A stretch of 64,000 nucleotides of DNA from Entomortierella parvispora E1425. Lineage: Eukaryota; Fungi; Mortierellomycota. Location: contig BQFW01000008.1 in NCBI GenBank assembly GCA_020891255.1, positions 1,488,001-1,552,000 of the forward strand. The letters run 5' to 3'. Positions within the stretch are counted from its first letter, which is position 1; each line of letters starts with the position of its first letter. Shown in pieces: positions 55,848 through 58,218 of the stretch. The notes beneath the pieces were generated by a model. It worked only from the letters and a program-made list of their open reading frames with translations, searched no databases and was not told where the DNA came from. A program made the translations under genes and the position numbers.

Positions 55848-56093
55848 CTTCGAGACACGAGGGGCAAAGAGGGTTCAAGATAACATGTTCTGAAATCTAG
55901 AGCAAAGGCTTTGGTCGAGTGGTGTTGTGTGGTGCAATAAAAGGCGCTACCCGTCTCCTTCTTTTCACTCTTTTCTTCTTCTTCAACTACACCCGCACCC
56001 GCACTCTCTCTCACCAACTCATCAAAAGCTGACCAGCTCGCTGCCCTAGGCACCCTCAACTCCACTCTCTTCTGCACCCCGGTACACCTTTCC

Positions 56094-56406
56094 ATGTACT
56101 CCCACTCGCAAGAAAAGAACTCTGCCGATTACATCTCTGACCAAGGTAAGCTTGCCGTCTCTTCTCCCCCTGCACTTCCTCTCTGATGGGTTCTTGGTTG
56201 TCTTTGTAGACCTGGCTTCTCGTTCGAACCAATGTGAAATTGGATGAATGGCGTTCACTAACCTGATCTTCCTCCCTTTTCCTCTCTTTCTTCTATTGCT
56301 GTCCTGTTTGTCGCTTCTCCCTGCCTTTCAATTGCAATCATGAATCCTTCAATTGTTGCCAAAAACGATAACAGTCTGGAAGAACGCCAATCCAAACAGC
56401 CTCTAA
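56094..56406 (+). CDS. Arginine attenuator peptide uORF (27 aa), spliced: exon 56094-56145, intron 56146-56374, exon 56375-56406
   Basis: Spliced translation is MYSHSQEKNSADYISDQVWKNANPNSL; D12, Y13, S15, D16 and W19 align with Neurospora AAP DYLSDHLW. Donor is AAG/GTAAG, branch CACTAAC near 56256-56262, and the first downstream AG is at 56373-56374. It lies upstream of CPA1. Confidence 0.88.
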
Positions 56407-56826
56407 AGCATACACACCGCAACTACCACCACATCACCCGCTACTTCTCCAACTCCTCCTTTGCTAAATCTCCGTTTGAAGCTCGTCCCCGCGACCTTCA
56501 CCTCGTCTCTCCTCTCTTTCTCAACACCCTTCCTTTTTTAAACACTTTTTTTTCTCTTTGATAAGAGTCGCCCTATTTTCCTCACCCCGTTCTATCCTCT
56601 CGCACTCTTGCTTGCTGCTTTCCACCAGTTCTTCCACGACAGCCGTCCGAAGTAATCGAAAGAAACCCAACCGAAAAAAAGATATTATCCATCAGCTTTT
56701 TAGCAGTCACCTACCCCACACCGCCACGCGATTCGATCATCTCTCCATCGTCCGATCCAGTCAGAAAGGATATATCCAAATCAAATCAAGCAAAACTATT
56801 CAACAAAAAAACAACTAGCAAACACC

Positions 56827-58218
56827 ATGTCCCTCCTCCGCCCTGCCCTCATCTCGCGTGCTATGGCCGTCAAGTCCTTGACTCGCCCCACTGCCCGCCT
56901 TGCCTACACGCACGTCCGAGCCCTGGCCACCGTCGCTGATACTGTCTTCCCTGCCAACAAGGCTGCCCCCAAGCCTGCGCACTCTGCTCCTTACCAGTTC
57001 GATGCCTCGGCCCCTAAGGCCACGCCTGCTGCCTTGAAGCTCAAGTCTGGACACGTCTTCACCGGAACCTCCTTTGGAGCCCAGAACTCTTCCTTTGGCG
57101 AGGCTGTGTTCACAACCTCCTTGGTCGGTTATCCCGAGTCCATGACTGATCCTTCGTACCGCGGTCAGATCTTGGTCTTTACCCAGCCCCTGATTGGAAA
57201 CTATGGAGTCCCTTCTCAGGAAAAGGATCAATTTGGATTGCTCAAGTACTTCGAGTCCAACAAGATCCAGTGCCAGGGAATCGTTGTCAACGACTACGCG
57301 ACAAAGTACTCTCACTGGACTGCCGTCGAATCCTTGGGAGAGTGGTGCGCTCGTGAGGGCATTCCCGCCATTTCAGGAGTCGACACCCGTGCCATCGTCC
57401 ACCTGCTTCGTGACCAAGGATCGACTCTTGCAAAGCTGGAAGTCGGCGAGGAAGTTCTGGAGAACAAGGAGGTCGTGGAATTCCCCAACCCCAACGAGCG
57501 CAACTTGGTCTCAGAGGCTAGCACCAAGGAAATCTATGAGCTGAACCCCATGGGCGACGTCAAAATTGCCTTGATCGACTGCGGTGTCAAGGAGAACATC
57601 TTGCGCTGCTTAGTCGCTCGTGGAGCCGCTGTCACTGTCTTCCCCTGGAACCACGACTTCAACAAGGACATGGATCAGTTTGACGGCCTTTTCATTTCCA
57701 ACGGACCTGGAGACCCACGCGCCGCCATGCCCACTGTCAACAACTTGGCCACTGCCTTCAAGAACCCCAACCCCAAGCCCATCTTTGGCATCTGCATGGG
57801 CAACCAGCTGATGGGCATGGCCGCGGGATTGGGCGTGTACAAGCTTCAGTTCGGAAACCGAGGACACAATCAGCCTGCAATCAACATGCAGAATGGACGC
57901 TGCAGCATCACCTCCCAGAACCATGGCTACGCTCTCGAGGATTCAGTCCTGACTCCCGGAAAAGGCTTGAACGGCTGGGAAAAGTACTTTGTGAACGCCA
58001 ACGATGGCTCGAACGAAGGCATCCGTCACCTCACCAAGCCCTTCTCCTCGGTTCAGTTCCATCCCGAGGCCAAGGGAGGTCCCCAGGATACGGAGTACCT
58101 CTTTGACGATTTCTTGAACCTCGCTCGTGCTGAGAAGGTCAAGATGTCGTCCAAGCCCTTCTACACCACCGAGTCTTTGATCAAGGAGGTTCCCAAGCCA
58201 GTGGAGGTTGTGGCCTAG
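56827..58218 (+). CDS. CPA1: Arginine-specific carbamoyl-phosphate synthase small (glutaminase) subunit, with mitochondrial presequence
   Basis: [36 protein letters not shown], nucleophile GICMGNQ, SQNHGYA and SVQFHPE. The N-terminus is Arg/Ser/Ala-rich, as in Neurospora arg-2. Confidence 0.96.

Follow-up and report, generated by a model that had tools for sequence, protein, structure and literature searches.

The arginine attenuator peptide (AAP) is a textbook translational switch of fungi. At CPA1/arg-2, scanning ribosomes leak past the start of an open reading frame situated upstream (uORF), ribosomes that translate it stall at its end when arginine is high, and nonsense-mediated decay takes part (PMC7038982, PMC11550727, PMC7049704). 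Asp12 of the peptide contacts uL4 in the exit tunnel (PMC7038982, PMC11550727, PMC7049704), and the D12N substitution abolishes arginine-dependent stalling (PMC7038982), which documents the need for this residue that the first-pass annotation had cited. The function of the peptide was found to be independent of where the conserved residues sit within it (PMC11550727), so the length of 24–25 codons may be no defining feature.

The window, meaning the whole 64,000-nt stretch of Entomortierella parvispora DNA that was analysed, carries the following features of a CPA1 locus.

56081..56093, + strand: 13-nt conserved block AGTACACCTTTCC, which sets the poor context of the upstream AUG (uAUG), with T at −3
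56094..56145, + strand: uORF exon 1, ATG at 56094, seventeen codons MYSHSQEKNSADYISDQ plus base 1 of codon 18
56146..56374, + strand: intron, 229 nt, GT-AG, phase 1, GTAAGC...TAACAG
56375..56406, + strand: uORF exon 2, bases 2-3 of codon 18, then WKNANPNSL and the stop codon TAA at 56404-56406
56407..56826, + strand: intercistronic leader, 420 nt, ATG-free
56827..58218, + strand: CPA1/arg-2 orthologue, small subunit of the arginine-specific carbamoyl phosphate synthase (CPSase), 463 aa

Read on the + strand, the spliced uORF has 27 codons, MYSHSQEKNSADYISDQVWKNANPNSL-stop, and ends at 56406. G56145 precedes the GTAAGC of the donor, and the spliced frame continues as VWKNANPNSL; the acceptor is ...TAACAG|TC, with its AG at 56373-56374, followed by TC TGG AAG AAC GCC AAT CCA AAC AGC CTC TAA. 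All coordinates and readings of the first-pass annotation (ATG 56094, the donor, the AG at 56374, and VWKNANPNSL-stop) were correct. If the intron is left in place, the frame gives a 30-aa read-through, MYSHSQEKNSADYISDQGKLAVSSPPALPL-stop. Residues 11–20 of the spliced peptide are ADYISDQVWK, which is the complete AAP core (D12-Y13-[IL]-S-D16-H17-[ILV]-W19-[KR]20, at fixed spacing) except for Gln in place of His17, and the intron lies inside this stalling core, between Gln17 and Val18-Trp19. The numbering proposed for D12, Y13, and W19 matched the positions in the 24-aa ascomycete AAPs of two environmental contigs (L014 and L016). The stop codon is located 8 codons past Trp19, as compared with 5 in yeast, and the uORFs of relatives span 24–28 codons; the proposed C-terminal extension likewise held, the C-terminus being 3 residues longer than that of the studied 24–25-aa AAPs.

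The spliced peptide passed the gathering score of the Pfam family Leader_CPA1 (PF08252; 19.1 bits, E = 8.4e-4, gathering score 18.5), whereas the unspliced read-through had no PF08252 match; exon 2 was required for the match. To keep the splice call from becoming circular, an independent profile was built from five unsplit AAPs (Coemansia, Blastocladiella, yeast, and two ascomycete environmental contigs), and peptides were enumerated over 55900-56826 from any ATG, with the intron absent or with any GT..AG intron of about 40–500 nt. The proposed splice ranked first among 69 candidates (42.4 bits). Candidates with exon 1 only scored 27–28.5 bits, and exon 2 contributed about 14 bits. Short peptides can match motifs and the acceptor had been picked by eye, so the resemblance might be a chance product of choosing one splice among many. 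We consider this reading refuted: the same enumeration in 55 random segments of the window gave at most 6.8 bits, the uORF is located upstream of the one gene family known for AAPs, and it is conserved in every relative examined. A PDB sequence search with the uORF peptide gave no match. The Pfam threshold, the score against the unsplit-AAP profile, and the CPSase small-subunit gene downstream all speak for the AAP identity claimed by the first-pass annotation, and on this sequence evidence the assignment of the 27-codon uORF as a genuine AAP of CPA1/arg-2 is well supported.

The downstream 463-aa ORF contains the Pfam domains CPSase_sm_chain (1.3e-46) and GATase (4.1e-48). It is 83–89% identical to Mortierellaceae proteins (best match Mortierella alpina, 89%) and 60–72% identical to those of Mucorales, Glomeromycotina, Basidiobolus, Kickxellomycotina, and chytrids; UniRef labels the relatives as 'carbamoyl phosphate synthase arginine-specific small chain.' Its N-terminal extension is predicted from the sequence to resemble a mitochondrial presequence. 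Dozens of stand-alone CPSase small-subunit proteins of early-diverging fungi (about 400–480 aa) bear the NCBI name 'Multifunctional pyrimidine synthesis protein CAD,' and on arginine-specific CPA1 orthologues this name is probably a propagated misannotation. A gene for squalene/phytoene synthase (SQS_PSY) was observed in M. alpina and G. multidivaricata; it has the strand of the AAP uORF and lies about 1.3 kb farther upstream, a placement that suggests conserved synteny.

L001:78-982, same strand as the uORF: SQS_PSY gene near the AAP uORF
L004:400-1262, same strand as the uORF: SQS_PSY gene near the AAP uORF

The window was compared with the sequence preceding the CPA1 orthologues of 11 further fungi, and the AAPs read as follows.

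Window: MYSHSQEKNSADYISDQ/VWKNANPNSL, intron phase 1, 229 nt
M. alpina: MYSHSQEKNSADYISDQ/VWKNSNPNHF, intron phase 1, 96 nt
L. zychae: MYSHSQEKNSADYISDQ/VWKNSNPNH, intron phase 1, 118 nt
A. ambigua: MYSHSQELNSADYISDQ/VWKSANPQY, intron phase 1, 123 nt
G. multidivaricata: MYSHSQEKNSADYISDQ/VWKNANPNQL, intron phase 1, 136 nt
Umbelopsis: MYIHAHEKNSADYICDH/IWKSSGAY, intron phase 1, 80 nt
Rhizopus: MYIHAYEKCSADYICDQ/IWKSSENY, intron phase 1, 54 nt
Geosiphon: MQPYSDTTAADYIAHQ/VWKTSTVGF, intron phase 1, 133 nt
Basidiobolus: MYFHTQEKNSSDYISDQ/IWKALNQTN, intron phase 1, 76 nt
Coemansia: MYTHSFERNSSDYIADQVWKALDI, no intron
Blastocladiella: MAAACYAHDQELVSLDYLCDQLWKSASH, no intron
Yeast (contigs L015 and L018): MFSLSNSQYTCQDYISDHIWKTSSH, no intron
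Chytridium lagenaria (tentative): MLCCYRHSSEKVSLDYISDQ/VFKSLSA, intron phase 0, 94 nt, one base off

The split AAP spans nine genomes, from three Mucoromycota subphyla and Basidiobolus, and in 9/9 split cases the intron follows base 1 of codon 18 (the N-terminus of Geosiphon is one residue shorter, and its site was placed by alignment). Mortierellomycotina, Mucoromycotina, Glomeromycotina, and Basidiobolus share this phase-1 site, and the intron in the AAP core may be an ancient one with a fixed position. When the five Mortierellaceae genomes were aligned, exons 1 and 2 formed sharp islands of conservation with an unalignable intron between them, the exon 2 island being AG|TCTGGAAGAAC..AATCCAAAC. 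Within the 12-codon core, D12, Y13, and K20 were invariant in 16/16 sequences and W19 was present in 15 of the 16, whereas synonymous differences between phyla occur in the codons for Asp, Tyr, Ile, and Lys. As judged from these alignments, the core of the AAP is under strong purifying selection in at least five fungal subphyla.

The Geosiphon pyriformis AAP (L007:2599-2810) reads DYIAHQVWK, with Ala15 and His16 replacing the near-invariant Ser/Cys15 and Asp16, and with 11.8 bits it falls short of the Pfam cut-off. The AAP-like uORF of Chytridium lagenaria (L010:2736-2913) has Phe at position 19, where all other AAPs have Trp; with an alternative intron of 43 nt, the peptide would read DYISDQ/WK and lack residue 18, and the gene model is tentative. 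In the basidiomycete Puccinia graminis (L011, 500-3200), examined with regard to the age of the intron, no AAP-like uORF was found, spliced or unspliced, with the patterns that recovered all others; the annotated CPA1 gene model of this species spans 4.1 kb and looks doubtful.

The residue at position 17 is a counterpoint to AAP function, as the window peptide has Gln whereas the studied ascomycete AAPs have His. The first-pass annotation was right that Gln occupies this position, but it is not peculiar to this fungus: Gln17 is the usual state in early-diverging fungi (10/12 genomes), with His17 in Umbelopsis and the ascomycetes. The uORF might accordingly be a true AAP homologue that has lost arginine sensing and only slows CPA1 translation constitutively, irrespective of the peptide sequence, a reading to which both Gln17 and the C-terminus, longer by 3 residues than in the studied 24–25-aa AAPs, lend some support; in the literature searched, we found no AAP with Gln17 and an 8-residue tail that had been shown to respond to arginine. 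We regard this loss as quite improbable. Strong purifying selection on the core alongside abundant synonymous change is unexpected for a sequence-independent uORF, Gln17 as the common early-diverging state is not a lesion, and AAP function is reportedly independent of the position of the conserved residues (PMC11550727).

Splicing was examined in the window and in transcript-like sequences. The window intron is the longest of the set (229 nt vs. 54–136 nt in the 8 other genomes), the intron sequences being unalignable, and contains five ATGs. Its only CTAAC branch-point candidate is located 113 nt before the acceptor, as compared with 27–51 nt in the relatives. The AG dinucleotides of the intron are at 56149, 56208, and the acceptor 56373 only, leaving a 163-nt AG-free zone (56210-56372) before the acceptor, and because no AG lies between 56208 and the acceptor, a branch point downstream of 56208 would first reach the AG that restores the AAP. 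Much of this zone is rich in pyrimidines, a stretch without counterpart in the shorter introns of the orthologues. The next AG (56381-56382) is found 8 nt past the acceptor, within TGG-AAG; as it spans the codons for Trp19 and Lys20, it is unavoidable in any AAP. It could compete as an acceptor, and its use would delete Val18-Trp19; in the relatives represented by contigs L013 and L017, the junctions show that the upstream AG is used.

These junctions came from a scan of JGI environmental contigs with a degenerate exon-exon junction pattern (DYI[S/C]D-x-[V/I]WK), which returned six contigs (L013–L018). Two of them (L015 and L018) are yeast AAP loci and two (L014 and L016) are ascomycete AAP loci. 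Contig L013, from a Mortierella relative (2,931 nt), encodes the contiguous peptide MYSHSQEKNSADYISDQVWKNSNPNHF, and its CPA1 ORF, 89% identical to the window CPA1, begins 520 nt downstream of the uORF. When aligned to the M. alpina genomic locus, it was colinear over the whole leader minus exactly the predicted 96-nt intron; it reaches 217 nt upstream of the uATG, and its first ATG is the uATG and its second the CPA1 ATG. Contig L017 is a Mucorales CPA1 contig with a spliced AAP from the same sample (Ga0170475). The intron is thus missing in two unrelated fungi within one sample, which indicates contigs probably derived from cDNA, and L013 and L017 are direct evidence for the predicted junction in relatives. 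For the window species, we infer from the sequence that the AAP uORF is likewise transcribed and spliced.

The distance between the branch-point candidate and the acceptor would favor the view that the intron stays in the mRNA, that the 30-aa read-through is what is translated, and that the downstream VWK match is coincidental. Several observations make this very unlikely. The read-through tail is unconserved, with a different sequence and stop in each relative, and has no Pfam match; the exon 2 island is in frame with exon 1 only after splicing in all 9 genomes; the spliced junction occurs in L013 and L017; and an intron kept in the mRNA would bring 5 uAUGs into a leader otherwise free of them.

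Exon 1 is more conserved than its peptide requires. Together with the preceding 13 nt (56081-56145), it showed 100% nucleotide identity in four Mortierellaceae genera and in contig L013, exon 1 itself being nucleotide-identical in the window, M. alpina, L. zychae, and G. multidivaricata. The 13-nt block was nearly invariant in the five Mortierellaceae genomes, and the sequence farther upstream was unalignable. Identical codons were used at 16/16 positions of exon 1, as compared with about 52% for conserved CPA1 residues in the same genomes (P about 3e-5 per pair), so the synonymous sites of the uORF are constrained beyond the requirement of the peptide. Pairing of an upstream GUACA with UGUAC, which lies in the AUG-UAC codons, could enclose the uAUG in a small hairpin, a fold that was not significant; RNA structure was rejected as the cause of the constraint, as the fold was no better than shuffled sequences (z = 0.19). 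The intron might have been retained because splicing adds a second layer of control over CPA1. Under such control, unspliced RNA would encode a Trp-less, arginine-blind peptide and carry extra uAUGs, so that CPA1 would be silenced at any arginine level, and the synonymous constraint in exon 1 could reflect signals for regulated splicing. We hold this second layer to be unlikely.

The start codons differ in context as the first-pass annotation had described, with a weak uAUG (TCCATGT, T at −3), a strong CPA1 ATG at 56827 (ACCATGT, A at −3), and 420 nt free of ATG between the uORF and CPA1. The leader from 56407 to 56826 has 0 ATG, as compared with 3.3 expected from its composition (P(0) about 0.03), and no ATG occurs between 55900 and the uATG either, a span of 194 nt. 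The other four Mortierellaceae leaders (519–648 nt) also have 0 ATG vs. 4.8–5.8 expected in each (P(0) = 0.002–0.006), whereas the introns of the same four fungi do contain ATGs. The intercistronic leaders of all relatives examined (28–648 nt) have 0 ATG. A pyrimidine is found at −3 in 11/12 uAUGs, the exception being Blastocladiella (T-G-G), and A at −3 in every main AUG examined. An architecture suited to leaky scanning is thus present in the window leader, with the same pattern in relatives save for the uAUG context of Blastocladiella.

The sequence of the intercistronic leader is poorly conserved among Mortierellaceae. One block, ATTATCCATCA ... TTTTTAGCAGTCAC (window 56684-56710), was found about 120–140 nt before the CPA1 ATG in five Mortierellaceae, and the rest of the leader around it was unalignable; the block does not act as a splice acceptor in contig L013, and it might have a regulatory role or belong to an internal promoter. 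The possibility of another leader intron, at a conserved TTTTTAG|CAGTC motif, was considered and rejected, since L013, which is transcript-like, runs colinear with the genomic sequence at this site.

Modeled on the Neurospora and yeast systems, regulation in the window would proceed as follows. The AAP uORF of the CPA1/arg-2 mRNA would be split by a phase-1 spliceosomal intron, and splicing would be obligatory, as a transcript that keeps the intron would have no Trp19 in its peptide and would expose the five extra uAUGs. At low arginine, most scanning ribosomes would leak past the weak uAUG and CPA1 would be translated. At high arginine, the nascent AAP and arginine would stall the ribosomes translating the uORF near its end, the stalled ribosome would block those scanning behind it, and CPA1 synthesis would fall; nonsense-mediated decay would probably be triggered by the stalled ribosome. 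Because the leader has every sequence feature needed, we infer that it works in the same way, provided that it is spliced first. Arginine-dependent stalling by the window AAP is predicted here by analogy, and we consider it highly probable that the uORF is an intron-split AAP with arginine-responsive control of CPA1.

The first-pass annotation had called the uORF probably unannotated, and the look-ups agree. An exact search of about 15 billion proteins recovered the yeast peptide (UniProt AAP_YEAST, 'Arginine attenuator peptide') and 0/9 early-diverging AAPs, that of the window included, and none of the four annotated relatives has a gene call at the uORF site. Given the absence of these peptides from public protein collections, the uORF can be taken as unannotated; annotation pipelines miss it partly because the intron hides it. 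Full-text searches found no publication describing an AAP with an intron, its splicing, or an AAP in Rhizopus or Mortierella, with Hood et al. 2007 outside their reach. That study reportedly published AAP conservation across fungi and surveyed AAPs and gene structure across fungal phyla, and an earlier report of the AAP intron, for example there, is likely. The window thus adds an unsurprising new AAP case to a well-known system, with the conserved intron site and the synonymous-site constraint as modest extras.

At the sequence level, the AAP switch appears intact in Mortierellaceae, wider Mucoromycota, Basidiobolus, Coemansia, and Blastocladiella. The natural variants found (Gln17, Cys15, Ala15, His16 in Geosiphon, possibly Phe19 in a chytrid, and tails of 5–8 residues) could be used in existing cell-free stalling assays to learn which residues are tolerated in arginine sensing. 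The fixed position of the intron may serve to mark and date its loss from CPA1 leaders, and searches for uORFs that use unspliced genomic DNA will overlook the split ones.

Among described systems, the uORF2 of hCMV gp48 and the MAGDIS/S-uORF of AMD1 resemble the window uORF in that the nascent peptide stalls its own ribosome and blocks scanning (PMC7038982), and some stalling uORFs of this kind respond to a small molecule (PMC7038982). They differ in having no sequence relation to the AAP, other effectors, and no association with CPSase genes. The 24-aa Neurospora crassa arg-2 AAP and the near-identical Pezizomycotina peptides of L014 and L016 (MSGRPS[VA]FTSQDYISDHIWKASVN) are closer, with the same numbering of D12, Y13, S15, D16, W19, and K/R20. 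Neurospora arg-2 also shares the poor uAUG context, the good main AUG context, and a downstream enzyme with an N-terminal extension that appears presequence-like. The ascomycete uORF is continuous, with His17 and 24 codons, whereas that of the window is split, with Gln17 and 27 codons, and the N-terminal halves are unrelated (MYSHSQEKN in the window vs. MSGRPSVFT). The yeast CPA1 leader peptide (YOR302W, AAP_YEAST, 25 aa) is also encoded by a uORF before the gene for the arginine-specific CPSase small subunit. It is unsplit, has His17, and ends 5 residues after the Trp (split, Gln17, and 8 in the window), and the main ATG follows after 56 nt as compared with 420 nt; both peptides belong to PF08252 and share the core DYISD-x-[IV]WK (QDYISDHIWK in yeast and ADYISDQVWK in the window).
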